A DNA stretch of 64,000 nt from Bugula neritina (GCA_964035545.1 OZ037766.1:4454722-4518721), one strand, 5' to 3'. Numbered from the stretch's first letter, positions 10,806 to 44,600 are shown. Notes: generated by a model from the letters alone, not told the origin. Numbers and translations: made by a program.

Positions 10806-10888
<83 letters not shown>
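10806..10888. repeat. (CA)n/(TA)n microsatellite
   Basis: Directly visible. Confidence 0.95.
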
Positions 10889-10889
<1 letters not shown>

Positions 10890-14310: not shown

Positions 14311-14598
14311 GGTCTATTATGAACTTTAGCTCTTTGGGTTTCGAGTCGTCGTAATAGAGTGCATGTGCGTGATGCAGAAGTTGTTAGTACTTCTCCTGCA
14401 AGGCCCATTCCGTTGTTGTTAAAAGCAAATTAATGGTACTCCCCTCAGAATCAATGCAACCGACCTAGAGCTATTGCAAACTAATGATATCATCAGTCAA
14501 AAATCTAGTTTTGGTAAAACTTTTGAACTTAGATAGATTTTGAATTTGCAAATAGATTGTGTGCTGTATTTTGCGACAATTTTGTATTACCAACCTTT

Positions 14599-14607
14599 TA
14601 TATATAC

Positions 14608-14693
<86 letters not shown>
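14599..14693. repeat. (TA)n microsatellite
   Basis: Directly visible. Confidence 0.95.
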
Positions 14694-14696
<3 letters not shown>

Positions 14697-14738
14697 TACC
14701 AAATATTTCAAAACAAAATCACTTAACCGTACACACAA

Positions 14739-14785
14739 CGACCTGATGATCGTGGCTAGCATTACGTGAAACAGTATTGTAGTCG
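14739..14785 (+). ncRNA. Minimal type I hammerhead ribozyme motif (Penelope-like element/retrozyme type)
   Basis: CGAC-CTGATGA-[tcgtggctagcattacgt, stem II]-GAAA-[cagtattg, stem III]-TA-GTCG. Stem I is CGAC/GTCG; GUA cleavage triplet, cut after 14781. Confidence 0.7.
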
Positions 14786-14835
14786 ATAAAATGAATATAT
14801 AAGTTTATTTTTATATCCGAAATTGTATCAGTACC

Positions 14836-14837
<2 letters not shown>

Positions 14838-14901
<64 letters not shown>
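14838..14901. repeat. (TA)n microsatellite
   Basis: Directly visible. Confidence 0.95.
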
Positions 14902-14903
<2 letters not shown>

Positions 14904-14952
14904 GTATACAACAGCTGTTTCGGGATTTGTCCCCTCATCAGCACCGAACAGA
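14901..14952 (-). ncRNA. Second, degenerate hammerhead ribozyme motif
   Basis: Minus strand: CTGATGA-GGGGACAAATCCC-GAAA-CAGCTG-TT. Good core, good stem II and palindromic stem III, but poor stem I pairing. Confidence 0.55.
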
Positions 14953-15634
14953 GTAATATGGCCCACACCAATGATACCAATGTATTATAGATATATATTG
15001 TAATATACTTATATATCATATTGATATACATTAAGTGTAGTAGCCTATTCATTGCTAAACATGGAACAATAGTTAATATGAATTTTCTGGAATAATATTC
15101 CTATTTTCACAGGTTGGTGTGAGACAAAACACAGTAATACAATAACCATAAACATTATTTTTAATGGATATTTATTATGGAAATATTGTTTTAAACAAGA
15201 AATATAAAAATACAAATAATATATAAATATATTTCAATAATATAAATTGCAACAGAGAGGGTTTGTGGTAATAATATTACAATAATGCTAAACAAAATAC
15301 AAGTAAAAGTCTATAAACTAATATTTTCTTGGGGTAATAAAATACACATATTTGAAATGTATAAACGATTCAGAAGCAAAATGAATCAAAACTGATGGTG
15401 AAAAATAGATCAATAAAACCTCAAAATTTGATGTTGATATGTGAATTGCCATGACATTGCCGGTGTGCAACCAGCAAAGCATGTTTCCTGATTGCTATAA
15501 TAATATGTTACGAATAATACAAAAATATACAATAATACAATGCATTTCTTACAATTGTCATCACTTCACTCAGGAGCCATCAATTAAGCAGTTGCTTTAA
15601 TATTAAGTAAACACTCCAATATATATATAATATA

Positions 15635-18600: not shown

Positions 18601-21600
18601 GGTGGCTACACAGAGTATACTACCAGACATGTTCTTCTGGGCTCCCTCAATGGTAAACTTGGTGTCCATGGCCGAGTCGTATGTTATCCAGGAGGGCATA
18701 TCTAAATACAAGAAAATAGAACTGTAGAGTACAAGATGGAGCTAGTAAATACTGTTTAAATGGGGCAGAGGTCATGTTCGAACATACTCTGCTAGATGCA
18801 TACATACCTTCCGTAATCTTTTGACCATTGAAGTAAAACTCTGTAGCAAAAGCGAGCCGATTTTCAGCGTCACAAACCACCTGAACATCTGAACCAGTTG
18901 GTTCATAACGATTTCGAGCGAACTTTGATCTATCAGTTAGTTTGGGGTATAGCTGAACTTTTACCTAGTAATGAACAGTGCATCACATCATATTTTACAC
19001 TCTACAGCAGTCAGGAACAAGCTTTGATTTACTTGTACAAGCTTTTATTTTACTTTTGTAAAAAGACACTATAGTAAAGTTGAGAACTGTCCAACAGTTG
19101 GTTTTAGTATACAGACAATGAGCTACATGAATTAACATATCATCTGACATTCTACAGCTCTCAGTTCACTTATGGATATTATGATAAAACTTTGGCTATA
19201 AGATAAGTTTGACTTCACTCACAGCTAATGAGTGTAGATAAAGTTCCTATATACAGAGACAAGGAAGTTCATAGATCATTTATAACATGACACTAAGGAA
19301 ATAGTGGTTGTAGGCACCAGTAGCTTCATGAACATGATAACAATTATTTCATAAGTTTGTATTGATTGCATCATTCACAAGTCACAAGTCTTCAGAGTTC
19401 ATTTGTTGAGTAAAATACTGATAATGGAAAAATACTGATTATCTCTTCGAAGGTGCTACTTGTCAACAAAAACTGAAAAGACAGCATGAATTTTAGCTGC
19501 CAACCAAAAGTATACTGCACTATAGTTAGCTCATCAGTGCAGATATAATGTAGGCCTACATAGTTGTATGCAGTCGGCTTTACTTACATTAAACACCAGA
19601 GTAGCAATAGTAGCCAAAGAGGTCTCGTTATACACCTCGCACTGCCACATCTCTTGCGAGTTACTCGATGGCAAGAAGATATAATTAAATTTTCCATCTG
19701 TGGAATCAGAAGTCGAGGCATCACCTGGTCGCCTCCACCTCACCTTCCCTTCTCTGCCGGCTCTAAAACATGTCAATAAGTGATGCCTGGGAAGTCAGTT
19801 TGGCAGCAATTATCGATAATAACTATGCCGAATAAGTGATCACCTCGGCCTGACTACAATCAGTTCTTAACATAGAAACTGGTCACAGTGGATTGTTAGC
19901 AATCAGTGTATCCTCTCATTAACACTTGCCGTACTGTACGCCGTAAGAGCAAATATCAGTCATTTTTACAAATGTCTGAACTTCCTGCACAGCGTTGCGG
20001 TACGTCAGGATCAAACACTGCTTCCTTCAAACAAGTTTCTGCGGGCTCCTATGTGACAGAAAAACTTTTGCGTCAACTCATTGGATATAATTGTCCAATG
20101 AAGTGTCATAGAACGTATCTAATAGCAAACTTTGAAAATCTCAGCCCGGACACATTAAAAATGGCTGACATTTTACGTTACGGCCTACGGTACGGCAAGT
20201 GGGAATGAGGGGTATGGGAAAAGGAAGTGGATCTGGACTGCGCATTCAAACACGTATAAAGGTGAAAAGTGTTACCAACCAGGAAGTTATTATTAGGTAC
20301 TGTTGATGTTAAATAACCCAATATATAATTGTCAATTTCTCCATGGGGTATTAACATATTGCAATGCATAAGTATAAGATTACAATAAGTCAAGATAAAA
20401 AATATCCACAGCTGTAGAAATATTTTACACTTTTAAGTTCTTCATTCTAGAACATGGAACCTTATATGTTTATAGATAGCAAACAAAGTTATTTACTCCA
20501 ACACAGTTTCACATCAACAAAAAGCACACAATATATTTTGAAGCTTTGAAAAAAACCAACTTCACTGAGTTCATTCTCTAAGAATCTGTAAATATTAGTC
20601 CTTCAGATAACAGTAGACAGTAGATATCAATTAATCTGGTATAGAGCTACAGGTAAACACTTACAGTCTTCCAAAGATGCACACAAGTTGACAGGGCACA
20701 CCCTCTTCGCACATGATTTCAGTCTTGACTTCGTGCACCATAGTTTCCTCATTCATTGTCAGGTCAGCTTCTTTCGGGTCTAAATAGGCAATTTCAGGGA
20801 TGTCCTCACTACTCGATCCCACAAGCAATGTGACCATATTTGCTACTGCTGCAGCATTGTCAATTGACAGTGTACAGGAGTACACATCCCTGCCTGTTCG
20901 CTTGTCCGAATCCAGCAGATAGGCAAAGAACAATTCGCCTAGAAAAACGAGTATAAATTGTAATTTTTCATAATCAAGTTCAACATGGAAGAACCAGAAA
21001 AACTTTGTGATAGAGTAATTTCAGCTTACTGAAGATTTGAAAGCAAGTCAAGATGTTACATGATAAATAAAAAAACATTGTGAACACAATTATAAAGTTT
21101 TTTCTAAGCGGCAGCAATCCAAAAATCCCATGCTAAGGATGTTGTAAACCCTATACAAATTACAGTATCTGCATACACACTATCAGAAAAAGAAAGACAG
21201 CATCCACTTTCTCACCAGTAATGGGGTTGGCTTTGATTCGATTTAAATTGTCTGCGCTGTCAAAGTTCAGATTTGCAAAAATGCCATTTGTTGATGTTTC
21301 CCATTTGAATTGAGGAATTTCTAGAGAAATTTCGCGTGTATACTGTGCAAGGTCTTCGGGCTCTGGAACTGCCCTGTCATCGTAAGTGTCTGGCAAAATG
21401 CATGGAATTGAGAATGGCTGGTTTAGTTCAGGACTTCCTACAGCGGGATTTGCCAGAACCGAACCTCCCAACACTTTTGGATCTACAGTAAGAAGGCAAA
21501 TGTATTATTACTTTTAACGTATTGAATGAAAGTAGGCACATTCAACCGGCATTGAATCAAAATGAAATCAGTTAATTCAGCTCTAACAAAATAAATATAA

Positions 21601-24185
21601 ACATTCCAGAGTTTAATAAAGGAAATTTTGTGAACAAAAAAGTGAATGGAAATCCAGTAGACAAAGAAATGTAAAAATTAATTTTGCAAAAGAAAAGCTG
21701 ACAAGTGAAAGTTTGTAAAAAGATTGCCTTCCCATTGCTAGCAAAATCAGATGCTTATATCAATATATAACATAGTACTAGCAACCAGCAAAGAAAACTT
21801 TCACTTTTTATTTTATGCTAGACTGAAGTGAGAAGGAAAAAATGAATTTTCTAGGAGAGGTAAATTAAAAAATGTAGTTAATTAAAAATATGCAAGCAGC
21901 TTTGTCATCCACATATATTGATTTTGCAATAATTTATAAAAAAAAACATTTGAATTTATTTTCAATTCAAATTGAAAAAACATTAAATATTTTATTCATC
22001 AATTCGATAGAAATTACTTTACCAACAATTTCAAACCTATAAGTTTGAGTTGCTAACTTTCAAAACTGTCGTTTTTTCGCTGATCACATAACATTTCGTA
22101 GATAAATCATGGTTCAAAACCGAGCCTGTTATTTCTCAATATACTTTTTCAAAACAATTTTCTTATCCAGTAGGTCTAATATAGTAGTATGTGACATTAT
22201 GGAGTATGTTGAAAAACCTTTAAGAGAGCAATTTCTCAACATATACAGCAATTGCATTCCACAATGCTGCTTCTGAAAAATTTCACTCAGATTGAAATTT
22301 TCACTACAATACCTGTACATAATACTTTATCATAAATGGAAATTATCACTGGAGACATGACTTGTAATGTTAACCAGACACACAGACGCCACAACAATCA
22401 GTGGAAACAAGGTGCTAAGTATAAACAATGATACAACTTACATGGCAAGATGACTCTAAATGTTGCTGACAATGTTTCAAACTTTCCACCGTTGTTAGAA
22501 GCCACACATCTGTAGTAGCCGTTCATTGGTTTCAAATCATCCAACTGTCGAGTATCTCCATCAGTGATAGTCAGTTCTTGCTCAGTGGTTGATATCCGGA
22601 TTGGAGCACCAACCCAGAGAGAGGGCAGTGTATCACTAAACGGACCTGCACTGGTTTCAGCATATTGAAACTTTAGAGTCTCCACATTGCTGGCACGGCA
22701 CGTCATTTTATTGACTATATCTACACCATCAGCTGCCTGGGCCACCTGCACATAGTCAGCTGGATCTTTCAGCTCCTTCTCAACAAAAAAGTGAGTGCCA
22801 AGATAGTCAATACTGGGTGCTTTGTCTTCTATTTGTCCTCTAGCTGTAACAAATTGAAGACTCTTGACTATAGAAATTAGGCACTAGCACATTGAACAGC
22901 ATACACTAGTCAAAATGAGTTAACAAATTCCTAAATAAGTGTAGTTAAGGCAGAGCTGGTAAACCTTGAATTATGAGATTAATTTGAAACTTTCATGTAA
23001 AGTTACACTGTATCAACAAAAAATAAATTCCCAATTCTGGTGGCACAGTAATTATGCAATAGCCAATGAATTTGGATGAAATAACAAAATATTCTTTGTA
23101 ACTGAAGTAAATTTGTATCTGACACCAGGTGTCACTATTGACGGTAAGTAGTCTCACTTAACAATGAGGGTCGGAATAGAATTCCCTTGTGCGGAAAACT
23201 AATTAAACTATCTAATACTGTTTGTTGCCAAATTATTTGCTAATGTGATTTTAATATTTTCCAGTGACTATTGATTTCTGGTGTTCGGTAACAGTGCTGG
23301 AGCGTGACAGGGACACGGCTATGGTTCGCCGATTTATATCACAGCAGCTGTAGTCAGAGACAGTGACAGAAATCAGATTCCTGAGATTTGAATCACTAAG
23401 ATTCAACAGGAATTGCAGCGCAAGTAATCACCATTGGCAAACCTATAGAAACTAACCACTACTATTGCTAACTCAATAGTAACCTAATCAAAGAGCAGAG
23501 TATTTCGCAAAGAATAAAGTTTATTATATTTATAAGAGTCAGTTATAAACATTACAACAGGCAACAGTCGACTGACTGCTATTAAAAATACAACTCTATT
23601 AGTATTTATGTCCATATTACGGACGTCTTGGAGCACAAAACAGACGTCTTGAGGTACAACCAATTATTTACATACAAAAATTTTATAAAGCTCACAACAA
23701 TTTTAATATAAAATTAGCATTACAACTTGTATCAACCAATCACAATATATCAAAATTAGTTGACCTAGCTTTGAGTTAGTTAAATTATATTGCCAGAATG
23801 ATTTAACTTGCAAGTCCGATAAAGATCACCTTGACCTAGTCTCTATATTCACAATATTCTTATTCAGGGCCATCAACTTGACGCAACATGTACTGATCAA
23901 TGGCTCTAATAATACTTTTTACTACATAACTACATTTTATTTGGTAAATAGGAAATCAAATATCAATAGCAGGTTAAATGACAGATACTTATCTAAATAT
24001 GAATACTATAAGAATTTGTGAAAACCAAACCTTTGCATGTTTTTCACAAAACAATCAGCACAGTATTTGCTTTTGCACAATTCTAGTAAAAAAGATATAA
24101 CCTTTGCAATAGTTTTCTATTACCTACACTTACCCCCAGTAATGAGTGTTAGCACAAAGATACAGGTCTTTAAACTCGCCACCAT
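15635..24185 (-). CDS. IgSF receptor copy B (5 Ig; GPI-like or TM isoform)
   Basis: Exons 24185-24134, 22867-22442, 21482-21216, 20938-20665, 19762-19588, 18964-18808, 18701-18555, 17806-17613, 17009-16826. Then either TM-1 16551-16466 (stop, 653 aa) or TM-2 16372-16235 plus putative tail exon 15720-15635 (VYVMKRKVNIKEEIVCRATLDLFNLCIF*, 699 aa). Frames intact; the tail exon is the least certain part. Confidence 0.85.
19911..20212. mobile_element. MITE family 2 (~300 bp) in intron 4 of copy B
   Basis: Imperfect TIRs CTCATTAACACTTGCCGTACTGTACGCCGTAA / TTACGGCCTACGGTACGGCAAGTGGGAATGAG, flanked by TA. The equivalent site is empty in copies A and C. Confidence 0.75.
23103..23926. mobile_element. 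Solo LTR (824 bp) in intron 1 of copy B
   Basis: TGAAGTAAA...TTTACTACA termini, 4-bp TSD TAAC. Empty site tgtaactacatt in copies D and E. Confidence 0.8.
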
Positions 24186-26643: not shown

Positions 26644-29600
26644 CTAAAATATGCATAAATTAAATAGGTCAAGTGTGGCTCTGCATACTATTTCTTCCTT
26701 GATGTTGACCTTCCTCTTCATTACATAGACTGTATAAGACAAGGCAAACATGTTTCTTAGAAGATGATTAATTGCACATGATTCAGTATATCATGTGATA
26801 AGAGATGTTTGATTGAGAAGCAGCGTGCATTGCCAAACTAATATACCTGACAGTTGAAAAATAAAAAAATATGAGGTATAGTTTCAGAGAGGCATACTTT
26901 TGCTTAGCTCAGTGAAACGAAAAATTAGGCGAACTGAAGTTATTCAGAAAAAACTGCAAATCCTCATCTCAAACAAGCGGCAGCTAATAACTGACTTAGG
27001 GTCACAATGCAACAGAAAAGAGTTTGTAGTCTTTTAATATTACTGAGACTTCTTACAGACTTCTGACATTAAAACACTGCATACAGGGTTACCGTGTTTA
27101 GAGAAGCTGCTGCTTTACAATGGTTAGTGAGGGCATTAAAGTAAAAGCATATAGAGAGGAACTGAAAGGAGAACAGCAGAGAGAAGGTGTGAGAGGCACC
27201 CTAGTTATTCGTGTGAGTGGAGAGCAAGGAGCAATTACTCTACCGTAGTACTGTTCGCCCTGCATCTTCCTCATATAACAGTGTATCAACACTATTAGCA
27301 AGATGAGGAAAAGAACTCCCCCAGCAATACCAATGATGAGTGCATACGGCACTGGGGGCGGCGGAGGAGGAGTAGCATAGGCGGAGCTACACATAGCAAC
27401 GATAATATTATGGCTAGAAGACATTTAAAACCTTACCATATAATTGCCTTCTTTTGTTTTCCTGCGTACATAATATTTATCACCCAATGAGCAGAATTAG
27501 AAAGAGGAAACCGCAGATTGCTCCAAAACTGAGAGGGTAGTGAGAAAATCCTGCATTGACTGCTCCTACAAGACATACAATGATCTACATACTTGTACAA
27601 ACAATGCAATGGTTACAGTGTAGTGTCTCACAACATTAAAGAGAAAGAAAACATGGGCTGGCAGGTTGTTGGAGTGTTAAAACCTGCTATAAAATCCAGG
27701 TAAAAGCAATAAGCTGAGCCTCAAGAGCAAATGAAGTGCTAATGCATAATATTTTTTGTGATGACAAGTGAAATAAATAATTAATAGTCTAAAAACATGT
27801 AGTTTCCTGATAGGGAAAAAGCAAGACACCCGACTTACCCGTAACGATATCAAAGACCACGGGTTCGCTTTGAATTGTCTTAGTAAAATCGCCAAAAAGA
27901 GAATAGGTGACCGCGCAGTGCCACTTGCTCGCCCTCAGGTTACGGGAGTTCTCACTGCCATTAGGATCAAGAGTAAGTGACATCCTTATATTCCCGTTAG
28001 TATTTGAAGATATAATTACGGACTAAAACAAATATAATTCTATAATCACTACTACTACAGCCTTGAATTGCAGCTGCTCAGCATAATCTAAACATGGAGT
28101 TATTAATTCATTTATTTCACCAAACAAACGGTACATCCCAAAAGTGTAAAAACATACAAAACAATTGGTCTAAGAGAACAAATTAAACAGATCTGTATCA
28201 ACAAACTTCCCAGACAATAAATTATTGTGGAACAGGTAGAAAAGTAGTGATTATAATCAGTGTACAATTTACTTGTCGAGCAAGAAGACAACTTGGACAA
28301 TGATTTTAGCAATTTAGTAAAAGAGCAGATGCATCTGATAGTTTTGGGATTTCTAACAAACAATAAATAACACAGAATACCCACCTTAACACCAACATCA
28401 TCTTCCTTTGTGACCTTGACATCAGACTTATTTGACATCCAATAAGCTTCCTCCACAACTGCATTGCTGTCCAGAGTGACCGCACACACAAAGTTGAAGG
28501 TAGACTGCGTGTAGTCAAGGTTTTCTATATGAATGATATAGGGCTGGGAAGGCAGAGGCGCCTGAAGGAAAACTGCTTCATCTACAGTACAACAAAATAA
28601 TCTAGACTCAACACTGAACTGATAGTACAAGGCCATATATATAGTTACACCAGATGACATTTAAGATAAAATAATTTTCGCCCGATTTATGATAATCCAG
28701 ATGCTAATATGTATTTTTCTCACACATATCTTAAATCAGCACATGAAAGTACCATAAATAGCAATTTTATGAATTTTAAGCCAATCTCACTCTTCATAAA
28801 AATCTGCTGATGTGTACTTAATAAATTAGAATGACCTAATTAAGATTATAACAGTGGAATGGGAGAAAGATGTTACATCTCCCAGATTTGTAGCTATGCA
28901 CCTACCATAGATTGTCAGGTCTGAGGTCTCATACAGAGTGCCAGCATCATTAGTGGCTACACAGAGTATACTACCAAACATGTTCTTCTGGACATTGCGA
29001 ATGGTAAACCTGGTGTCCATGACTGAGTTGTAAGTTATCCACGAAGGTGTACCTAAATACAAGCAAATAGAACTGTAGAGTACAAGATGAATTTGGTGAA
29101 TACTGTTTTAATGGGGCAAAGGTCATGTTGGAACGTACCCTGCTACATACATACATACCTTCCGCGATCTTTTGACCATTGAAGTAAAACTCTGTAGCAA
29201 AAGGGCGTCGATTTTCAGCGTCACAAACCACCTCAACATCTGAACCAGTTGGTTCATAACGATTTCGAGCGAACTTTGATCTATCATTCAGTTTGGGATA
29301 TAGCTGAACTTTTACCTAGTAATGAACAGTGCATCACATCATATTTTACACTAAACAGCACTCGTGAACAAGCTTTTATTTTACTTGTACAAGCTTTTAT
29401 TTTACTTTTGCAACAAGACACTATAGTAAAGTTGAGAACTGTCCAATAGTTGGTCTTACTATAAAGATAGTGAACTACATAAATTTAAATATCATATGAC
29501 ATAAGAGATTCTTCTACAGCTCTCAGCTTGCATTTATGATGAAACTTTGGCTATAAGATAAGTTTGACTTCACCCACAGCTAATGAGTGTAGTTAAACTA

Positions 29601-32600
29601 ATTATATACAGAGACAAGGAAGTTCATAGAACATTTATAACATGACACTAAATAAATAGTGGTTGTAGGCACCAGTAGCTTCATAAACATGATAACAATT
29701 ATTTCCTAATTTTGTATTGATTGTTCATCACAATAATTGTGAAATTGTATCATTATCAAGTCACAAATTTTCAGAGCTCACTTGCTGAGTAAAATTACTG
29801 ATTATCTCTTTGAAGGAGCCACTTGTCAACAGGAACAGAAAAGACAGCATTAATTTCAGCTGCCACCCAAAAGTATAGAGGCAAGATCTGACCCTATACT
29901 GTACTATAGCTAGGTCATTGGTGTAGATGTAATGTACATAGTTGTATGCAGTCGGCTTTACTTACTTCAAACACCAGAGTAGCAATAGTAGCCAATGAAA
30001 TCTGGTTATACACCTCGCACTGCCACGTCTCCTGCGAGTTACTTGATGGCAAAAAGATATAATTAAATTTTCCGTTTGTGGAATCAGAAGTCGAGGCATC
30101 ACCTGGTCGCCTCCACCTCACCTTCCCTTCTCTGCCGGCTCTAAAACATGTCAACAAGTGATGCCAGAGAAAACAGGATGACAGCGATTATCAATAATAA
30201 CATAACATAGAAACTGGTCACAGTGAATTGCAAGCAATTAGTCCATGGAAAAAGGAAATGTATGTGGACTGAGCATTTAAACACTGGTGAAGGTAAAAAA
30301 GTGATACCAACCAGACAAACTGATGATTACTGTTGATATTGAATAACCTAATATATAATTGTCAATTTCCCGATGGGGTGTTAACAGGAGGCAATAAGAT
30401 AAAACAACATCCACAGCTATAGAAATAGTTTACACTTGCAAAGTCTTACGTTGTAGAACATAGAACCTTTATAGAGACTCTTAAAGTTAACCAATGTTCA
30501 AACAAAGTCTTTACTCTAACACATTTTAACATTAATCAACACCAGAGCAATTTCTTTCATTTAAGCCTTCTCTGAGAACCTGTAAGCCTTGATCTTTCAG
30601 ATAACAGTAGATATCAATTAATCTGGTATAGAGATACAGGTACACACTTACAGTCCCCCAAAGATGCATACAAGCTGACACGGCACACCCTCTTGACAAA
30701 TGATTTCAGTGTTGACACCATGTACCATAGAGCCATGTTGATTCATTGTCAGGTCAGCTTCTTTCGGGTCTAAATAGGCAATTTCAGGGATGTCCTCACT
30801 ACTCGATCCCACAAGCAATGTGACCATATTTGCTACTACTGCAGCATTGTCAATTGACAGTTTACAACGGTACACATCCCTGCCTGTTCGCTTGTCCGAA
30901 TCCAACAAATAGGCAAAGAACAATTCGCCTAGAAAAAGGAATATAAATTGTAATTTTTCATAATCAAGTTCAACATAGAAGAACCAGAAAAACTTTGTAA
31001 TAGAGTATTTTCAGCTAACTGGAAAATTGAGAGCAAATCGAGATGTTACTTGACTTATAAAAAAAAACAAACATTGTAAACATGGTCACACAGCTTTTTC
31101 TTAAGCGGTATTAATCTAAAAATCTTATTTCAAGAATGCTAAGGATACTGTAAACCTTATACAAATTACAGTATCTGCATACACACTATCAGAAAAAGAA
31201 AGACAGCATCTACTATTTCACCAGTAATGGGGTTGGCTTTGATTCGATCTATATTGTCTGCACTGTCAAAGTTCAGATTTGTAAAAATGCCATTTGTCGA
31301 TATTTCCCATTTGAATCGAGGAATTTCTAGATCAATTTTGCCGGTATACTGTGCGAGGTCTTCAGGCTCTGGAACTGCCCGGTCATCATAAGTGTCTGGC
31401 AAAATGCATGGAATTGAGAATGGCTGATTTAGTTCAGGACTTCCTACAGCCGGATTTGCCAGAACCGAACCTCCCAACACTTTTGGATCTACAGTAAGAA
31501 GGCAAATGTATTTTTTTAACATAGGTATTGAATGAAAGTAGGCACATTTAACAGGCATTAAATTAACACTCAGACCTAACAAACATCCTAGAATTTAATA
31601 AAGGAAATTTTGTGGACAAAACGTGAATGGGAATTCAGCGGACAAAGAAATCTGAAAATTAATTTTGCAGAAGAAAAGCTGACAAGTGAAAGTTTGTACA
31701 AACATTGCTTTTCCACTGCTAGCAAAATCAGATGCATGTATCAATATAAAACATAGTAGGCTACTAGCAACCAGCAAAGATAACTTTCACTTTTTATTTT
31801 ATGTCAGACAGAAGTGAGAAGGTAGTACGACAAAAGTGACAAGGAAAAAAATGAATTTTCTAGGAGAGGTAAATTAAAAAATGTAGTTAATTAAAAATAT
31901 GCAAGCAGCTTTGTCATCCACATATATTGATTTTGCAAGAATTTATAAAAAAAACCTTTGAATTTTTTTTCAATTTAAATTGAACCAACATTAAATATTT
32001 GATTTATCAATTCGATAGAAATTAGTTTACCAACAATTTCAAACCTATAAATTTGAGTTGCTAACTTTCAAAACTGTCGTTTTTTCGCAGATCACATAAC
32101 ATTTCATAGACAAATCATTGTTCAAAACCTGGCCTGTTATTTCTCAATAAACTTTTTCAAAACATTTTTCTCATCCAGTAAGTCTAATATAGTAGTATGT
32201 GAGATTATGGAGCATGTGGAAAAACTTTTAAGAGAGCAATTTTTCAACATATACAGCAATTGCACTCCACAATGCTGCTTCTGAAAAATTTCACTCAGAT
32301 TGAAATTTTCACTACAATACCTGTACATAATACTTTATCATAATTGGAAATTATCACTGGAGACATGACTTGTAATGTTAACCAAACACACAAACACCAC
32401 AACAATCAGTGGAAACAAGGTGCCAAGTATAAATAATGATACAACTTACATGGCAAGATAACTCTAAATGTTGCTGACAATGTTTCAAACTTTCCACCGT
32501 TGTTGGAAGCCACACATCTGTAGTAGCCATTCATTGATTTCAAGTCATCCAACTGTCGAGTAACTCCGTCATCGATAGTCAGTTCTTGCGCAGTGGTTGA

Positions 32601-35600
32601 TATCCGGATTAGAGTACCAACCCAGAGAGAGGGCAATGTATCACTAAATGGATCTGTACTGGTTTCAGCATATTGAAACTTTAGAGTCTCCACATTGCTG
32701 GCACGGCACGTCATTTTATTGACTATATCTACACCATCGGCTGCCTGGGCCACCTGTACATAGTCAGCTGGATCTTTCAGCTCCTTCTCAAAGAAAAAGT
32801 GAGTGCCAAGATAGTAAATACTGGGAGCTCTGTCTTCTATCTGTCCTCTAGCTGTAACAAATTGAAGACTCTTGACTATAGAAATTAGGCACTAGCACTA
32901 TGAACAGCGTACAGTGGTCAAAGTGAGTTAACAAATTCTTAACTCACTGTATATAAGGCAGAGGTGGACACTTTGAATTATGAGATTAATTTGATAATTC
33001 CATGTATGCAATGCAATGGCTACAGTGTAGTGTCTCACAATACATATTGCAAATGTTACAGAGAAAGGACGCATGGGCTGGCAGGCTGCTAGGATGTTCA
33101 AAACCTGCTATAAAATCCAGGTAAAAGCAATAAGCTGAGCCTCAGATCAAATGAAGTGCTAATGCATAATATTTTTGTGATGACAAGTGAAATAAATAAA
33201 TAGTCTAAAACATGTAGTTTTCTGATAGGGAGATAGCAATGACACCCGACTTACTCGTAACGATATCAAAGACCACGGGATTACTTTGAATTGTCTTAGT
33301 AAAAGCCCCAAAAAGAGAATAGGTAACCACGCAGTGCCACTTGCTCGCCCTCAGGTTACGGGTGTTTTCACTGCCATCAGGATCAAGAGAGAGTGACATC
33401 TTTATTTCTCCATCATTATTTGGAGATATATCTACGGCCTAAAACAAATATAATTCTATAATCACTGCCACAGCCTCAATTTACAACTGCTCAGCATTGT
33501 TTCCACATGGCTATTTGTAGATGCTCTAGCTTGTCATGATTGGCTCAGGGCTAAAATTTGAAAGTTTAGAGACAAAAGTGGCCCCGGGTCTTCAGTTTAA
33601 CAACTCAGGCCCAATTTTCTCAGCAAAATGTGCTGTTAATGGCTGTGGCATAGTAAAAGGTTGGTATTTGCTACTCTTTGGAAAAACTAGATGGAAATGA
33701 AAGATGTTCGAATTTATGTTTGAAACCACTTGATGTAATTGGTTTAATCAGTTCAACAAACAGACTGTACAGCTTAGAAGTGTGAATACATGGAAACAGT
33801 CGGTTCATAAAAAACAACTAATTAACCTCAAGTATTACAGCCTTCACAAATGTTCATGAACTTTACTGACAATGAGTTATTGTGGAACAGGTAGAAAAGT
33901 AGCAATTATAACCAGTGAGTGTACAATTTACTTGTCCAGCAAGAAAAAAACTTGGACAATGATTTTAGCAGTTGAGTAAAAAATAAAATACATCTGATAA
34001 TTTTGGAATTTCTAACCAACAATAAATAATACAGAATACCCACCTTAACACCAACATTATCTTCCTTTGTGACCTTTACATCAGACTTATTTGACATCCA
34101 ATAAGCTTCCTCCACAACTGCATTGCTGTCCAGAGTGACCGTACACAGGAAGTTGAAAGTATTTGTGGAGTTGAGGTCTTCTGTATAAATAATATAGGGA
34201 TTGGAAGGCAGAGGCGACTGTTCGAGAACTGCTTCATCTACAGTAGAAGAAAATAATCTCAACACCAGAATATTGAGTACATAGTCATAGTCTGTTAGTC
34301 TATTACTATAAGCTTGGCAACTAAAATGAACGGAATCAAATTTTTCCTATATGTCATAAGAGAAGGCAACTGGGTCACTTCACACTGAATGAAATCAGTT
34401 TTGCCTGATTTATGAAAATATATGCTTTCTTTGCCGTAAACTATTTAAATGTTAGCAAATAATTGAAAATATTCAGGTGTTTTTCAAATTTCCCAACATT
34501 TTCAGTGTTTTTATATAAAGTTATTAGTAAAAAAACAGGTTACAGTGATGTTGTTTGCATCACTGTTAGTGAACTGCATTTAATTATAAGAACAACTCTA
34601 TTCCATATACTTGGAACTATTTTTTTTTAATAGTTCAAATAAGATACAAACTATACTTCTATTTGGTGGTGAAAATGTAAGCAAAATAGGGTTCAAGTAC
34701 AACCGATCTTGTTCCGCAAAGTACATTTCGCACACCTACATTTTTGTTTAGAAATAAAAGGTTTGGTGTTACACAACTTTTCCTTAGCCTTTTTTCTTAT
34801 GTACACATTTAAACTCAGCAAATGGAAATACCCCCTAATAAATTATTTTTTTGAATTTTAACCCAAATGAACTTTTTGCCCTAATCTGCCAGTATGTAGT
34901 AGATAAACTAAAATGGCCCAATTAGGATTATAACAGTGAAATGGTAAAAAGACGTTACTTCAATCAGATTTGTAGCTATGCACCTACCATAGATTGTCAG
35001 GTCTGAAGTCTCATACAGAGTGCCAGCATCATTGGTGGCTACACAGAGTATACTACCAGACATGTTCTTTTGGGCTCCCTCAATGGTAAACTTGGTGTCC
35101 GCGACTGAGTCGTCTGTTATCCACGAAGGTGTACCTAAATACAAGCAAATAGAACTGTAGAGTACAAGATGAAGCTAGTAAATACTTTTTAAATGGGGCA
35201 AAGGTCATGTTGGAACATACTTTGCTAGATGCATACATACCTTCCACAATCTTTTGACCATTGAAGTAAAACTCTGTTACAAAGGCGACCCGATTTTCAG
35301 CGTCACAAACCACCTCAACATCTGAACCAGTTGGCTCATAACGATTTCGAGCAAACTTTGATCTATCAGTCAATTTGGGATATAGTTGAACTTTTACCTA
35401 GTAATGAACAGTGCATCATATCATATTCTACACTAAACAGCACTCAGGAACAAGCTTTGATTTACTTGTGCAAGCTTTTATTTTACTTTTGTAACAAGAC
35501 ACTATAGTAAAGTTGAGAACTGTCCAACAGTTGATCTTACTATAAAGATAGTAAACTACATGAACTAAAATATCATCTGACATGAGATATTCTTCTACAG

Positions 35601-38600
35601 CTCTCAGTTTCCTTATGAATATTATGATGAAACTTTGGCTATAAGATAAGTTGACTTCACCCACAGCTAATGACTGTGGTTAAATTTACTACATACAGAG
35701 ACAAGGGAGTTCATAGAACATTTATAACATGGCACTAAGGAAATAGTGGTTGTAGGCACCAGTAACATGATAACAATTATTTCCTAAGTTTGTATTGATT
35801 GCTCATCACAATAATTGTGAAATTGTACCATTCACAAGTCACAAGTTTTTAGAGTTCAGTTGCTGAGTAAAATACTGATAATGGAAAAATACTGATTATC
35901 TCTTTGAAGGAGCCACTTGTCACCAGGAACAGAAAATGCAGCATCAATTCCAGCTGCCAACTAAAAGTATAAAGAGTTAGGGGCAAAATCTGACCTTATA
36001 CTGTACTATAGTTAGCTCATCAGTGTAGATGTAATGTACATAGTTGTATGCAGTCAGCTTTACTTACTTTAAACACCAGAGTAGCAATAGTAGCTAATGA
36101 GGTCTGGTTATACACCTCGCACTGCCACATCTCCTGCGTGTTACGCAACGGCAAGAAGACATAATTAAATTTTCCATTTGTGGAATCAGAAGTCGAGGCA
36201 TCACCTGGTCGCCTCCACCTCACCTTCCCTTCTCTGCCAGCTCTAGAACATGTCAAAAAGTAATGCTTGAGAAGTCAGCTTGGCAGTGATTTTTGATAAT
36301 AGGTATGCCGATTAAGTGATCACCTCGGCCTGACTACAATCAGTTCTTAACATAGAAACTGGTAACAGTGGATTGTTAGCAATCAGTGTATCATCTCATT
36401 AACACTTGCCGTACTGTACGCCGTAACAGCAAATATCAGCCATTTTTACAAATGTCTGAGCTTCCTGCACAGCATTGCGGTACATTAGGATCAAGCACTG
36501 CTCCATTCAAACAAGTTTTAGCAGGCTCCAATTGGACAGAAAAACTTTTCCGTCAACTCTTGGATATAATTGTTCAATGAAGTGGCATAGAACGTATCTA
36601 ATAGTGGACTTTGAAAACTTCAGCCCAGGGACATTAAAAATGGCTGATAGTTTACACGGCACAGCAAGTGTGAATGAGGGGTATGGGAAAAGGAAATGAA
36701 TCTGGACTGCGCATTCAAACACGGATGAAGGTGACAAGTGTTACCCACCAGGAAAGTTATCATTACTGTTGATGTTGAACAACTTAATATATAATTGTCA
36801 ATTTCTCCACGGGGTATTAACATATTGCAATGCATAAGTATAAGATTACAATAAGTCTAGATAAAAAATATCCACAGCTGTAGAAATATTTTACACTTTT
36901 AAGTTCTTCATTCTAGAACATGGAACCTTAGATGTTTATAAATAGCAAACAAAGTTATTTACTTCAACACAGTTCCACATCAACAAAAGCACACAATATA
37001 TTTTGAAGCTTTGAAAAAAAACCAGCTTCAGTGAGTTCATCCTCTGAGAATCTGTAAGTATTAATCCTTCAGATAACAGTAGATATCAATTAATCGGGTA
37101 TAGAAATACAGGTACACACTTACAGTCCTCCAAAGATGCATACAAGTTCACACGGCACACCCTCTTTGCAAATGATTTCAGTGTTGACACCATGTACCAT
37201 AGAGCCATGTTGATTCATTGTCAGATCAGCCTCCTTCGGGTCTAAATAGGCAATTCCAGGGATGTCCTCAATACTTGATCCAACAAGCAATGTGACCTTA
37301 TTTGCAAGTTCTGCAGCATTGTCAATTGACAGTGTGCACCGGTACTCATCCCTGCCTGTTCGCTTGTCCGAATCCAACAAATAGGCAAAAAACAACTCGC
37401 CTAGAAAATGAATATAAATTGTAATTTTTCATAATCAGGTTCAACATTACATGGAAGAACCAGAAAAATTCATAATAAAATATTTTCTGCCAACTAGAAA
37501 ATTGAAAGCAAGTCAAGATGTTACACGATAGATAAAAAAACATTGTGAACACAATTACAAAATTGTTCCCAAGCGGCAGCAATCCAAAAATCCCATGCTA
37601 AGGATACTGTAAACCCTATACAAATTACAGTATCTGCATACACACTATCAGAAACACTATCAGAAAAAGAAAGACAGCATCTACTTTCTTACCAGTAATG
37701 GGGCTGGCTTTGATTCGGTTTAAATTGTCTGCGCTGTCAAAGTTCAGATTTGTAAAAAGGCCATTTGTTGATGTTTCCCATTTGAATTGAGGAATTTCTA
37801 GTTCAATTTCGCCTGTATACTGTGCAAGGTCTTCAGGCTCTGGAACTGCCCTGTCATCATAAGTGTCTGGCAAAATGCATGGAATTGAGAATGGCTGATT
37901 TAGTTCAGGACTTCCTACAGCGGGATTTGTCAGAACTTGCCCTCCCAACTTTTTTGGATCTACAGCAAGAAGGCAAAGGTATTATTACTTTCAATTTATT
38001 GAATGAAAGTAGGCACATTCAACTGGCATTGAATTAACACAAAATCAGTCAATTAAGACCTAACAAAATAAATATAAACATCCTACAGTTTAATGAGAAT
38101 TCAGTGGGTAAAGAAATAAAAAAATTAATTTTTCGAAAGATAAGCTTACAAGTGAGTGTTTTTGCAAAGATTGCATATCATATATATAACGTTAGCATTC
38201 AGGAAAAAGAGCATTTGACTTTCACAACAGGTCAAACAAAAGTGAGAAGAAAGTACAACAAAAGTGCCCAAATTAAATCATCTTGTAAAAGTAAAGTTCT
38301 AAATGAAAAATGTGTTCATTTAAATAATGCAAGCAGCTTTGTCATTTGCATATATTAATGTTGCCATAGTAAATTAAATTTATGGAAAAAAAAACATATC
38401 AAAGTTAATTTGAATCAAATTTTGAACAGTAAATTAAGTTTTTCATTTATAAATTCAATAAACATTAATTTACCATAAATTTCCAACTTATAAATCTGAA
38501 TTGCTAACTTTCACTATTACTAATACTGGTTACATGACTTATAAAGATAAAATTACAATTTCACGCATAAATCTTGGTTTAAAACTGGGCTTGTGTTTTC

Positions 38601-41600
38601 TTAATATACTTTATCAAAACAATTTTCTCATACAGTAGGTCTAATGCAGTAATATGTGACGTTATGGAGTATGTGGAAACGCTCGTAAGGGAGAAATTTC
38701 TCTCAACATATACAGCATATGCATTCCACAATGCAGCTGTTATAATTTTCAGATTTAGGGTTGATGTGCTATCCAGAGAGTCTATTTATTTACTATAGAA
38801 CTGCACCAGGATAAGTCGAGTGAACGAGTATATTTTACACACAATTATACATTATAAAAACGATACATTATTTCCAAACAAGTTACACATCTAATCTATT
38901 TCACACTCTAGCTTTGACTGAGTTAACAGCGGGAAACTATAATTGCTGCTAACTATCAACTACGCTAATTGGATAGCCATTGTTCCGGGTCAATTACGCG
39001 ACCCCACATGTTGTGCTGCTGGTAGTTCCACGAACCACCACACCGCCCCCACCAGCAGAAAGCCACCTTTCTGATATATATATAAAAAAAAACATTCATT
39101 AGTAACCGCATACATCAGTGGACAAAATAATACATAATATACAGGAAGAGACATAATAATAGACAGAGTCATTATAACGATCCGTTGCATACAAGTGGCC
39201 AGCTGTAGATAGACGAGGAATACTAGCTAGCTGTGGTGTTAGACAGGGGATAACCTGTTAAGCAGTCAAACATTTGCATGACATCTTGGTTCCTCCCAAG
39301 ATGTGAAGTTGCGGAGTATTCTGGGTAGCCTAACTAGAGTCCTTGTTGGGCACGCTGGTGCTTGGCTTGGCATGTACGCAGTTTCCGTTTCATACAGCAT
39401 ACGGATCCCTTTAGCTGGAAGAGTCCTGTTGTAGTGTTAAGTAGATCTGGTGCCAGCTGGGTGAATTCTTCTTGTAATCGCAGGAGGCGTTCTTCTACTG
39501 TGGCTAGGCGGACTGGGTCTGGGGACGGTGTCCGTCTGCGGCGCAAGGGTGGACTGGGGGACCTGGTTCGTCTCTTCGCCGGGGTAGGGGAGATCTCTCC
39601 TTCTTCTGGATATGTAGTTTCCTCGGGGGTGTATGTAATTTGAGGGCGGTCAGACACCAACGGGGATTGTTGGCGGGCGTTGTCTAACACACGTTGGAAC
39701 CCCGAGGACAGAACGGCTAATAGCATGGCCTTCTTCACCAGAGGTCGTATAAGTGTGAGGAACTCCGGGTATAGCTTAGCGTCGACCACGTAGTTTTCTC
39801 CAGGGAAACAGCCCGCCGCTCTGTGTCTGGTGACGGGGTAGGGATACACATCATTGTACCCGCAGGGGCAGAATGTTAGTAGGAGATGAGCATTGACGTG
39901 TAGTTTAAGGGAGCGGTGAGAGGCGCAATCTTCACCACAGATCTGGCATCTCGTCCGTCCTCTGGACCCCCAGGCCGTTTCTATTTCTTCTTCTGTTTGT
40001 GGAGACACCCACCGCCAACGGCGGTGTAGTGGCTCAGGCCGGTCACCACTAGCATACTCCTCTGGATACGGAGCGGGAAGTGTTCTATCCCGTACCCTGG
40101 TTGTAGCGGGTTCGAGTGTAATCTGAAAAAGTTTCAACAGTGTTAATACAGTACACTGCTGTGTTGTCAGCTTGAACAGCTTGGCAACTCCTAATTCAGT
40201 TACCTCGTAGAGATTTATGGTAGTGAATAGTCAGATAGAACACGTATTGCAATGAGATTATAAAAATCTCTAAGTCAAACTGAGTTCTTACTACGGTATT
40301 TCACTAGCCTATCTCCAGCTCGATTGACTCAGTGAGTCAGAGCTGAGCGATGCAATCTAGTTTCGTATTAAGATATAGTTAACTCACCCCACGATCTGTT
40401 GTCGTAAGACATACTGAATGCGTGAAATGGTTTGAACTACTGCTTAGAAACACGTCTACTCCTGACTGCATCAGCGTATGAAAAGATTGAGCAACGTGGT
40501 TGGGGTGCGTGATTAAGACTTTGTGCACCCGGCGGATGAATTTTGTTTCTATTTCCGCCGATGCAAAAGTTGATATTTCCGTGGTGTTGACAACTCCCAC
40601 ATTTGCTCGATTCTTTTCTCGTACGGTTTTCCCCTAGACTTTCATGCGTGCCGCCTTTAACGCAGTCACATACGAAGTCCTTCAAGTATGCGGGGGATTG
40701 CCTCGTACGCTGTCCCCTTTCTAGGGGGGGTGACACGCTTGCCGGTTCGTTAGTAGGGGCCTCTAATGGCGTCTCTACTTCACCGTCAGCGGTCACCTCT
40801 TCTTGTTCTCCGGATGGAGCCCCTCCCTCCGTGGGGGTTTGCACTTCCGGAACCGGCTCGGTTTCTGAAAGTGATGGAATTAGACTTGGCGGTGGCGGAC
40901 ACGCTTCTGTTGACAAAAGCTGCCGCTCCTCTCTCACCAAGTTTTCTTCCCGCGGTATGACCACTTCGTATTCAGGTCCATGCCGCCGTCGCCCGCGCGT
41001 TGTTGTCTGCCTCCTGGGCTCTAACAACGGGGGGCTTCTCCCACTCCGTCGGGGCTAGCCCAATACGGTTTCAAGCGAGACTCATTCTGGATAGACACCT
41101 GTCCTAAGCGCTCAATCTTGTACGTATGATTGGGCATAGCCTCGACGACCACGTAGGGCCCTACGAACTTAGGCTTCAGCTTATCAGCCTGTCCGCGGCG
41201 CCTACGGTAATTGACCATCCACACCTTATCTCCCCTTTGATAGAGAGGTGGTTCATCGGAATCTTCGTGCCGCACCTTCCACTGCTGTTGGCGCAGTATA
41301 TCGTGTGCGGCCTTCATCCGTTCCACTAGTTCACTGGCATACTCGTGGACTGAGTTATCTTGCTCTGGAACGTGATAGGTGAGATGGTCAGGGACACGAA
41401 TCTCTCTCCCGAGCATCAAGAGGTTTGGGGTCTCACCAGTACTGGTGTGTGGGGTGCTACGGTATGCACGCATGACTTGCGGCAACACCGTATCCCATTC
41501 CTCTTGACCTCGTCCAAGGAGGAGACTCCGGAGTGCATCACCTAGCATCCGATTGTTGCGCTCCACCACCCCGTTACCTTGAGGGTGGTAGGGGGTGGTC

Positions 41601-44600
41601 CTGCTCTGATTTACTCCCCAGAGGCGGCAAAGGTCGCTCATCAGTTGAGACTGGAATTGAGCGCCTTGATCAGAGTGTATCTGTTCGGGGAGCCCAAAAT
41701 AACAGAATACATGTTGGTCTAGTGCCCTGGCCACTGTTGGGGCTGATGCATCTGGGATAGCCAGAGCATCCGCCCACCTAGTAAAGTGGTCGGTTAATAC
41801 TAGGATCCAATTGTTGCCTCTGGGGGTCAGGGGCATGGGTCCGACCAGGTCTACAGCGACTACTTGCCAGGGCCTACCAGCGTATAGCCTCCGCCGTCCT
41901 GCTTCACCAGGGGGGCGGCTATGCTTACTGGCCTGGCAGATCTCACACTGTTTGACTCTGAGCCGGACATCACGCTCCATTTGTGGCCAATACCACCGAA
42001 GTCGTAATTTGGACATCACTCGCTTGACCCCTGCGTGGGCCTGTTTGTGAGTATCCCAAATCAACTCACGGCGGATGGCTGTGGGGCAGACTACCCTCTT
42101 CCTTTCCGGGTGTCTGCCGCTGGCAGCTAGAGAGATGGTTAGCAACCCATCCTGCCCGATCCGCAGCGAGTCCCAACGCTGACAGTATAGCCGGAATTCG
42201 GCGCATCCCTGCCGTATGCGTTCCTCGCTGGGTCGTCGCCCTTCCCTTTTGGCCCGGTATATGTCTGCCACGACTCCAGGCAGCTCTTCTTGGAGCTTTT
42301 TCAGCTCTCGAACATTACCGGCCAGTACAGGGTTGGCGCGGAGGTTTTGTACATCCTCCGGGGACTCATCAACTCTTTGCCTGAGTTGACCTTGATCCCA
42401 GTCAAACGGTGCTCCGTGGTGAGCCAGCGTCTCCAACTCGCATCGCGGGGGACCTCCATCCCTCCTCTCGATGTTGAGACACTGTTTGCAACCTCCGTCA
42501 GGTCGGCGACTCAACCCATCCGCATTGCTGTGTCTCTTGCCCGGTCGATGTTCGATCCGGTATGAGAATTCAGCTAGGATTTCGAGCCACCGGGCGACCT
42601 GACTAGAGGGCTCTGCTCTCCTGCACAACCAGATCAGCGAGGCATGATCCGTACACAGCCGGAACTTCCTGCCATATAGGTATGGTCTGAAGTGCTTCAC
42701 TGACTTGATTACTGCCAGCAGCTCCTTGCGGGTAGTGCAGTAATTTCGTTCAGCGGGTGAGAGAGACTTGCTGTAGTAGGCTACTACTACCTCTCGGCCT
42801 TCCTGCACTTGTGACAGCACAGCGCCAACATTTTGGTCACTGGCGTCCGTGTCTAGGATGTACTCCAGAGTGGGGTCTGGGTAGGCCAAGATGGGCGCCG
42901 TTAGTAGGCAGCCCTTGAGGCGGTCGAACGCTTCTTGTTCGACTGGAGTCCACTGCCACGTCACTCCCTTTGCGGTGAGCCGGTTTAACGGCTGGGCTAT
43001 GCCCGCAAAGTCTGGTGTGTATTGCCTGTAATACCCTACCAGCCCCAAGAAAGCCCGGAGTCCGGTCAAGTCTTGGGGGGTGACCCAGTCTTCTACTGCC
43101 CGTACCTTTTCGGGATCCGTTGCCACGCCGTTTCGACCGACAACGTGTCCCAGGTACTTGACCTCCGGCTGCAATAGAGCGCACTTGGAAGGTTTGAGCT
43201 TGAGACCGGCACCTCGGAGTCTCTCGAAAACCTCCTGCAGACGACTGACATGTGTCTCGAAGTCTGGAGAGATTACGATGACATCATCGAGGTAGACCAG
43301 CAGTGTCTTCCAATGGAGTCCGCTAAGGACTTGTTCCATCAGCCTCTGGAAGGTGGCTGGGGCGGAGGTTAACCCGAAGGGCAGCACCTTCCACTTCCAC
43401 AAACCGTCCCGTGTGATAAACGCCGCCTTCTCTTGGGCGTCGGGACTCAGAGGAACCTGCCAATAGCCGCTTAGCAAGTCTAACGTACTGAAGTACTTGC
43501 TGCCGGCTAGGGCGTCCAATGACTCGTCAATACGAGGTAGAGGGTAGGCGTCCTGTATGGTGACGCTATTGAGTTTGCGGTAGTCCACACAGAACCGCCA
43601 ACTGCCGTCTTTCTTCCGGACCAGTACGACTGGCGAGCTCCACGCACTATGGGCGGGCTCTATCAGTCCCCGGTCCAGAAGATCCCGTACTTGTCGGCTA
43701 ACCTCCTTCTCTTTCTCCGGCCCCAGCCTGCGTGTGGGCTGCCGGACAGGGACTGTCCCTGCAGTCAGCGGTATTTCGTGTCTGACAATTCCAGTCAGTC
43801 CCACGTCATGCTCTCCGCTGCTGAACACATCACCGTAGTCGCGTAGTAACTTAGCCATAGCTTGGCGTTCTCTGTTACTCGCGCAGCCGCCACTGGCTGT
43901 TTCGTATAACTCCCGGAGATGTGTTGGGACTGCCCCTCGTCCCTGAATAGGGCACTGAGGGAGTGCCTCTGTCGCATCACCCAGCGACGGGCCTACGTCT
44001 CCCTCTTGAACAGAGTGGAAACGGCCCAGCATCGACCCAGCCGGGAGCTTGATAGGCTCGGTAAAGAGGTTGACGCACTGCACTAAGATCTCCCCTTGCT
44101 CAGTCAGCTGATTCAGACTGCTGGCAAGTTGGATCTTTTCGTGCGCGCCTTCAACCACCCCGAGTCCAGAGATCCGGCTACTATTCACCCTGCAGTGAAT
44201 GGTAGCCCGGGAGCGGCCTGGTATGATACGGTTGCGTATCACTTGCACACCTCCCACTAAAGGGCGGCCGAACTTGTCGACGCAGGCGAGTTCCCGCCCG
44301 GACATCATCATTGCAGATCTGCTAAAATCTATGTGACATCCGTGCCGTTTAAGGAACGGCATCCCGAGGATAGCATCCTCCTTGAGCTGACTGACGATGA
44401 ACGTCTCTTGGATCGTTTGATCACGGACTCGTCCCGTCAGCTCAATTATACCATAGAAGGGAAGGCACGACCCGTCAGCTAGGGTGCCGTATTCCCCTTC
44501 GTATGCTTCCATCTCGCCCCTGACCCTAGCACTGAGGGTGTCGAAGAGTTGGCGGCTTAAGAGGTTTGTGGTACAGCCCGAATCAATGAGGAAAGTAACA

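Follow-up and report, generated by a model that had tools for sequence, protein, structure and literature searches.

The 64 000-nucleotide (nt) stretch of the Bugula neritina genome analysed here (GCA_964035545.1 OZ037766.1:4454722-4518721), referred to below in its full length as the window, is AT-rich and carries five paralogous receptor cassettes in tandem on the minus strand, in the order E, D, C, B and A. Two neighbours, D and C, are joined without the sequences found between the other cassettes, and the joined unit (D-C) is predicted to encode a single surface protein with ten immunoglobulin (Ig)-like domains. Self-comparison of the window places cassette E at 56778-50100, D at 46912-33009, C at 33006-27000, B at 23000-16000 and A at 7450-500. 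Each cassette contains eight ectodomain exons, which were located by aligning the cassettes with a model of C curated by hand. All of them (40/40) are open and flanked by AG and GT, bar the near acceptor of exon 5 in D, which reads AA. Their phases, from exon 1 to exon 8, are 1-1, 1-1, 1-2, 2-0, 0-1, 1-1, 1-0 and 0-1, and the ectodomain block of every cassette starts and finishes in phase 1. The whole 216-Mb assembly contains five Ig1-type copies and five exon-8-type copies, all inside the window.

A stand-alone cassette is composed of a signal exon, the eight ectodomain exons, two alternative anchor exons and a tail. The signal exon (52 nt, conserved in sequence) lies 0.4-1.3 kb upstream of Ig1 in cassettes A (7946-7895), B (24185-24134), D (47274-47223) and E (57163-57112), where it codes for the hydrophobic 17-residue sequence MVASLKTC[IL]FVLTLI[TS]G followed by 1 nt and a phase-1 GTAAGT donor. 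Both anchor exons are in phase 1 and lie 3' of exon 8. One resembles a glycosylphosphatidylinositol (GPI) signal, with a stop directly after a hydrophobic stretch. The other encodes a transmembrane segment and starts, behind a phase-1 acceptor, at 895 in A, 16342 in B, 27351 in C and 50457 in E; in these four cassettes a run of proline codons forms a 12/14 pyrimidine tract ahead of that acceptor. A scan of the array found no in-frame GPI-like first anchor exon in cassette E.

Between D and C this layout is interrupted. When the region 32300-33700, and cassette B with its spacer, were compared with the window by blastn, two separate homologies were found to meet at the D-C junction. Positions 33009-38738 are colinear with B 16588-22271 (exon 2 to intron 9), and positions 30245-33006 are colinear with B 20214-22999 (exon 3 to a point 116 nt before Ig1). 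Intron-9-type sequence gives way abruptly to intron-1-type sequence at 33006/33009, within the interval 33003-33010 given for this switch in a preliminary description of this DNA. The geometry of that description was also reproduced: exon 8 of D (33438-33255) ends in a phase-1 donor, GTAAGT after an exonic A, and is separated by 379 nt from the Ig1 exon of C (32875-32450), whose phase-1 acceptor reads tttctatag before TC. The 116 nt upstream of this acceptor match the other cassettes, and the acceptor region is identical to theirs. About 4.6 kb that is present between other cassette pairs is absent here, namely the anchor and tail exons (about 0.5 kb) and the spacer that includes the signal exon (about 4 kb). 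A signal exon of the type that precedes A, B, D and E was not found between exon 8 of D and Ig1 of C. Homology and the signal-exon search thus agree with the earlier statement that the anchor and tail exons of D, the spacer and the signal exon of C are all missing. Ig1-type sequence next to exon-8-type sequence occurs only at this place in the 216-Mb assembly.

Two marks of a fusion gene are therefore seen at the locus: both parental types meet at one junction, without the 3' end of the upstream gene and the 5' end of the downstream one, and the open reading frame is continuous over the junction, donor and acceptor both being in phase 1. Because each cassette starts and ends in phase 1, any join of intron 9 to intron 1 would be in frame; the in-frame result is a consequence of this symmetry and not of luck. 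The preliminary description had placed the switch at a TGTA match. The tetranucleotide is indeed present near the break in both parental intron types, but TG (33007-33008) separates it from the first intron-9-type letter, and the match is not exact. Inexact microhomology at the break is plausible.

The joined unit can be read from the signal exon of D to the anchor exons of C, all on the minus strand. The signal exon of D (47223-47274; MVASLKTCIFVLTLITG plus 1 nt, GTAAGT donor, phase 1) is the only one open to it. Exon 1 of D, coding for Ig1, lies at 46357-46782 (open, phase 1 to 1), and exons 2-8, spanning 33255-37959, lie at 37959-37693, 37400-37124, 36242-36068, 35385 (or 35397)-35241, 35134-34988, 34237-34044 and 33438-33255; all are open. 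The hybrid intron of 379 nt (32876-33254) follows, made of intron-9-type sequence at 33254-33009 and intron-1-type sequence at 33006-32876. Exons 1-8 of C (27839-32875) lie at 32875-32450 (Ig1, with a second in-frame acceptor at 32851), 31488-31222, 30928-30652, 30140-29966, 29303 (or 29315)-29159, 29052-28906, 28581-28385 and 28022-27839, all open and bounded by AG and GT. Of the two alternative anchor exons of C, exon 9a (27480-27565) has a phase-1 acceptor and encodes GAVNAGFSHYPLSFGAICGFLFLILLIG followed by a stop, a GPI-signal-like end, whereas exon 9b (27244-27351) has a phase-1 acceptor, a transmembrane stretch VPYALIIGIAGGVLFLILLIVLIHCYMRKMQGEQYYG and a phase-1 donor. A frameshift in exon 9b was considered and rejected: the phase-1 acceptor behind the pyrimidine tract gives the frame in A, B, C and E.

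Frame continuity was tested piecewise by script, over the signal exon, the 16 ectodomain exons and the first anchor exon of C (exon 9a). The model is 1256 residues long, or 1264 residues if an acceptor 12 nt upstream of exon 5 is used in both cassettes, which reproduces the 16 open Ig exons and the 1264-residue chain first described. The 16 exons of D and C (3.6 kb) are free of stops, and none of the split codons is a stop either; the one divided by the junction reads ATC (Ile) or, if the acceptor at 32851 is used, ACT (Thr).

Intron 1 of D contains a Ty3/gypsy-type long terminal repeat (LTR) retroelement of 7.5 kb (38738-46245, minus strand), in the same orientation as the gene. Its 305-nt LTRs, at 38738-39042 and 45941-46245, are 100% identical and it is bounded by a 4-nt target duplication, CAGC. 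It has a frame of 1363 codons for protease, reverse transcriptase, RNaseH and integrase; its other long open frames have no Pfam matches. Cassette homology picks up again at both edges of the element, which looks like a very recent insertion. The identity of the LTRs places the insertion long after the fusion.

The join was compared with independent sequence data. The read evidence consists of assembled Logan contigs, not of raw reads; in one run, X1, no bin of the 6-kb stretch around the junction is left without coverage. Genomic reads over the junction had been named as a check on the fusion, and an X1 contig of 237 nt, on 32893-33129, spans it with 0 mismatches at a depth of 111.8. Flanking single-copy contigs of the run have depths of 106-123 and haplotype-specific contigs 55-78, which suggests that both haplotypes of the sequenced sample carry the join. 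A search with the Ig1 exon also recovered three open reading frames (ORFs) from the Joint Genome Institute (JGI) metagenome sample 3300002729. One of its contigs, L012 (2055 nt), aligns in one piece to 34158-32136, through the junction; every other cassette aligns to it only as two separate pieces. The junction letters of L012, ATTGCATTG followed by CATACATGGAATTATC, are identical to those of the window. L012 has open frames in exon 8 and Ig1, a GTGAGT donor and both of the possible acceptors; some of its residues are common with D (GEI, ENT) and others with C (FFFEK). Two further contigs from this sample (L010 and L011) show about 86-92% identity to canonical portions of the array. From this divergence the sample represents a lineage roughly 9-14% diverged, and not a misassembly of the same DNA.

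An assembly artefact would mean that tandem copies were mis-joined or collapsed and that the true genome has a normal tail for D, a spacer and a signal exon for C. Tandem copies that are 85-94% identical collapse easily, and one X1 contig matching from 33009 on runs into canonical anchor-exon sequence. A collapse, however, would join homologous sequence, and the D-C junction is non-homologous; the short-read contig crosses it without mismatch at normal depth, and the same junction occurs in the independent metagenome contig. The loose-ended contig is letter for letter sequence of B, C and E, with 33 nt at least 95% like D, which indicates cross-mapping among paralogs; an undeleted D allele was rejected on these grounds. 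We regard an artefact as extremely improbable: the genomic join of D and C is real. By the genomic evidence, the shared junction shows that the fusion predates the split from the lineage 9-14% diverged.

The arrangement is best explained by a non-homologous joining of intron 9 of D to intron 1 of C. The outcome is the 379-nt hybrid intron, with a GTAAGT donor from D and an untouched branch, pyrimidine and AG region from C, both sites in phase 1. Absent between the two cassettes are the anchor and tail exons, the spacer of about 4 kb with its promoter, and the next signal exon. The promoter and signal exon of D would then drive one pre-mRNA, spliced to the 16 ectodomain exons and the anchor of C, from which a surface protein with ten Ig-like domains and about 1256-1264 residues would be made.

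How the junction came about can be framed by the relations among the surrounding parts. The block formed by the tail of E, the spacer and D pairs with the block formed by the tail of C, the spacer and B at 94%, judging from the spacer and tail homologies. This pairing places the D-C junction exactly at the edge between two copies of a two-cassette duplication. In one possible history, the duplication would have occurred by homologous exchange and been followed by a non-homologous deletion of 4.6 kb. In another, a single non-homologous tandem duplication with ends in intron 1 and intron 9 would have copied E to D as C to B and made the fusion at once, with nothing deleted. A map of nearest paralogs, tried as a test of deletion against duplication breakpoint, is a mosaic and does not decide. 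Homologous unequal crossing-over on its own was rejected, the breakpoint being non-homologous with at most the displaced 4-nt TGTA in common. Of the deletion or unequal recombination named in the preliminary description, the deletion is one of two possible histories; homologous unequal crossing-over does not fit the junction.

Exons and non-coding sequence have diverged differently between the window and L012. Over 729 aligned nt of exons there is 8.6% mismatch and no indel event, versus 13.9% mismatch and 15 indel events over 1281 aligned nt of non-coding sequence. At the non-coding rate 8.5 exon indels are expected and 0 are seen (P(0) = 2e-4). The ratio of non-synonymous to synonymous substitution rates (dN/dS) against L012 is 0.30 for exon 8 of D and 0.47 for Ig1 of C. 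Within the window it is 0.30-0.50 for pairs with D or C and 0.35-0.55 for pairs among A, B and E. At the level of these alignments, the exons on both sides of the junction are shown to have been under coding constraint since the lineages split.

The paralogs have also exchanged sequence. Over 27000-38700 the nearest paralog switches every few hundred bases, giving a mosaic in which the 3' part of C is nearest to E, its 5' part to B, the 3' part of D to B or A, and the middle of D to E. Such a pattern points to gene conversion or recombination having occurred repeatedly within the array. Trees of the D-side and C-side parts of L012 did not group them with D or C, and the paralogs of each lineage look homogenised. 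Because the trees do not resolve the relationship, orthology between D-C and L012 is drawn from the identical junction and the few common residues.

Among the paralogs, Ig1 is the most conserved exon (89-95% amino acid identity, dN/dS 0.25), and exons 7-8, which encode the membrane-proximal Ig domain, are with exon 2 the most divergent (68-97%, dN/dS 0.6-0.7). Exons 7-8 exist in two types, A/B/D versus C/E. Recognition receptors usually show the reverse of this pattern. The proteins of D and C are 87% identical, with the largest differences in exons 7-8; that the fused chain carries two different specificity sets, as had been proposed, is a conjecture. At the start of the fused Ig1 in L012 (1299-1345, against 32875-32829 of the window), the first residues are RGAIKYRVPNID, a strong departure from the consensus of RGQIEDRAPSID in all five window copies (5/5). 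The residues at this position would form the mature N-terminus in stand-alone genes, and the change in L012 fits a switch to a linker role.

We consider it a well-founded prediction, with a probability of roughly 60 per cent, that the D-C unit yields a ten-Ig mRNA and protein; this is inferred from the gene structure and its conservation. Several observations weigh against it. The splice joint from 33255 to 32875 is not listed in the contigs of the X runs, although only one expected splice joint of the stretch is listed at all, so that this is uninformative. Among the runs that cover the exons, X6 and X7 also lie over conserved intron pieces (32876-32908, 36006-36066) and may be DNA, not RNA. 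When the whole library was searched with the Ig1 exon, no long protein of high similarity was recovered, and hence no annotated gene model of the family. The near acceptor of exon 5 reads ttcaa in D and ttcag in the other four cassettes. The sense LTR element in intron 1 of D could lead to reduced or truncated transcripts on this haplotype, and gene conversion from working copies may keep a silent copy open and so mimic constraint.

The remaining transcript data are neutral. In the RNA-labelled run X5 and in X6 and X7, the exons are covered and 33001-33200 is empty. The contigs of these runs measure 55-137 nt and map across paralogs, as seen from an impossible joint from 36242 to 30654, an exon 7-8 joint with letters of neither D nor L012, and loose ends matching other cassettes; they neither support nor exclude a fusion transcript. 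A search of public metagenome contigs for the spliced-junction pattern, with both acceptors, gave seven matches, all unrelated to the window and attributable to chance. For exon 5, an in-frame acceptor with a better pyrimidine tract lies 12 nt upstream (ctgttcattactag followed by GTAAAAGTT, window 35386-35397) in all five cassettes (5/5), and a splice defect in D was rejected on that account. This upstream acceptor is probably the real site, adding VKVQ; if so, the AA of D is a silent CAG>CAA change.

The same observations can be read as signs that the fusion is real but dead, D-C being silent or decaying and its frames kept open only by conversion from working neighbours. The lack of a fusion transcript among the contigs, the sense LTR element, the AA at the near exon-5 acceptor and the mosaic paralog relations, which reflect conversion, would all agree with this, as would the position of the L012 Ig1 on the longest branch of its tree. 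Yet the 16 exons (3.6 kb) have gained no stop or frameshift and lost no splice site over a synonymous divergence (dS) of about 0.17-0.2, exon indels are absent where 8.5 were expected, and dN/dS remains at 0.3-0.5, as in stand-alone cassettes; with identical LTRs, moreover, the element came long after the fusion. We therefore hold a dead fusion to be unlikely. It is slightly less likely again that D-C is one locus with alternative modules, producing D-only (33255 to the anchor of C), C-only (47223 to 32875) and D+C forms. Phase 1 is common to the signal donor, both module ends and the anchor acceptors, which would keep the three products in frame, and since C has no signal exon and D no anchor, each depends on parts beyond the other. 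Skipping eight constitutive-looking exons with strong sites would nevertheless be unusual, and no RNA evidence for such skips was seen. The further proposal, that D-C is an incipient module-choice locus in which one promoter and signal exon and one anchor set serve two five-Ig modules through block skipping, is quite doubtful. Improbable, too, is a secreted five-Ig protein from D, reading into the hybrid intron or ending in it, with C untranslated. D lacks an anchor exon of its own, and read-through of the exon-8 donor would add 16 residues (SKSGVIAISLSENYMF) before a stop; but the donor is a perfect GTAAGT, direct reading of the 379 nt reveals no AATAAA, X5 has no depth in 33001-33200 and the exons of C are still constrained.

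The assignment of the domains to the Ig fold draws on a structural model and on sequence motifs. The AlphaFold2 model of the Ig1 exon, built with 22 relatives, has a mean predicted local distance difference test score (pLDDT) of 87.2 and a predicted template-modelling score (pTM) of 0.81. Its best Foldseek matches are an antibody light-chain variable domain (VL), the N-terminal Ig of neuroplastin and Ig1-2 of PTP-delta, with probability 1.00. Ig1 is accordingly modelled as a V-like Ig domain, the fold evidence being that for Ig1 only. In the alignment of 23 Ig1 sequences C56 never varies, and Y118 and C120 hardly do; the motifs YRC, WQCEVY and ILCVATN occur in other exons. In Pfam, every Ig match falls under the gathering score: I-set reaches E = 0.0026, with 18.2 bits versus a cut-off of 23.7, and Ig_2 and Ig_3 reach E = 0.16-0.32. 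Profile comparison with Protein Data Bank sequences gave weak F-strand matches only (DCC, contactin 4, Robo2), and those library relatives that matched over several stretches are strong Ig_3/I-set proteins. Five Ig domains per cassette would fit the B-strand Cys, the W and the Y-x-C over exon pairs together with the weak Pfam matches. An L1CAM/neuroglian identity, with six Ig domains and fibronectin type III (fn3) repeats, was rejected, no fn3 having been found in the exons of cassette C at E <= 1; the exon map passes from the last Ig exon straight to the anchor exons.

Fusion of neighbouring genes by this route is already known. Sdic is reported to have arisen from a segmental duplication spanning two adjacent genes, which were fused through deletions (PMC7475035). 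It is the closest documented parallel to D-C. In both, a tandem-duplicate region is involved and loss of the intervening sequence makes neighbours one transcription unit (predicted in the case of D-C), and in both the fusion sits inside an array of paralogs with further recombination. Sdic, however, joins unrelated genes and has a new first exon, whereas D-C joins paralogs of one family head to tail via intact introns and doubles a whole ectodomain; the expression of Sdic has been demonstrated, and D-C is known here from genomic sequence.

Human KIR fusion (hybrid) genes are attributed to unequal crossing-over in the KIR complex (PMC3460180, PMC11444179). As in D-C, rearrangement in a tandem array of Ig-like surface receptors creates new receptor genes from neighbours. 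The KIR hybrids form by homologous recombination at equivalent positions and keep a normal domain number. In D-C, by contrast, intron 9 is joined to intron 1 without homology, and there are twice as many domains; KIR fusions are polymorphic alleles, whereas the D-C fusion is common to two diverged lineages.

Long Ig arrays grow by block duplication inside genes of the Ig superfamily with phase 1-1 exons. D-C resembles them in its phase-1 module and in the in-frame addition of Ig exon blocks that lengthens the array on one chain. It differs in that the added block is a whole neighbouring ectodomain and stand-alone genes of the parental type are still adjacent. Primate CEACAM genes, which include surface receptors of five Ig domains anchored either by GPI or by a transmembrane segment, may serve as a lead. 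Like the cassettes, they combine a multi-Ig ectodomain with a short anchor, one alternative anchor exon stopping after a hydrophobic stretch. No sequence-level relationship to them was found, however, the Pfam matches being sub-threshold and the nearest library proteins generic multi-Ig ones.

If D-C is expressed, it offers a direct view of a long Ig ectodomain arising in one step, by intron-to-intron addition of a paralog, with stand-alone genes of the parental type available next to it for comparison. Its retention in two diverged lineages, with constraint on both sides, makes it more than a transient structural variant. The array also gives bryozoan biology a defined, lineage-restricted family of surface receptors. 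We know of no recognition receptors characterised in this phylum, and a literature search on bryozoan Ig receptor arrays found nothing relevant. A module-choice locus, if it existed, would be a new route to receptor diversity and could bear on self/non-self recognition in a colonial animal. The word search for Ig1 relatives, which gave the three genomic ORFs, covered proteins of 78-247 residues.

Two features of the array lie away from the D-C junction. An extra segment of about 0.8 kb (23103-23927) in intron 1 of B has no counterpart in the other cassettes. The B-A spacer is 9 kb long, twice the length of the other spacers, and carries long (TA)n/(TATG)-type microsatellites at 10693-10938 and 14474-15000.

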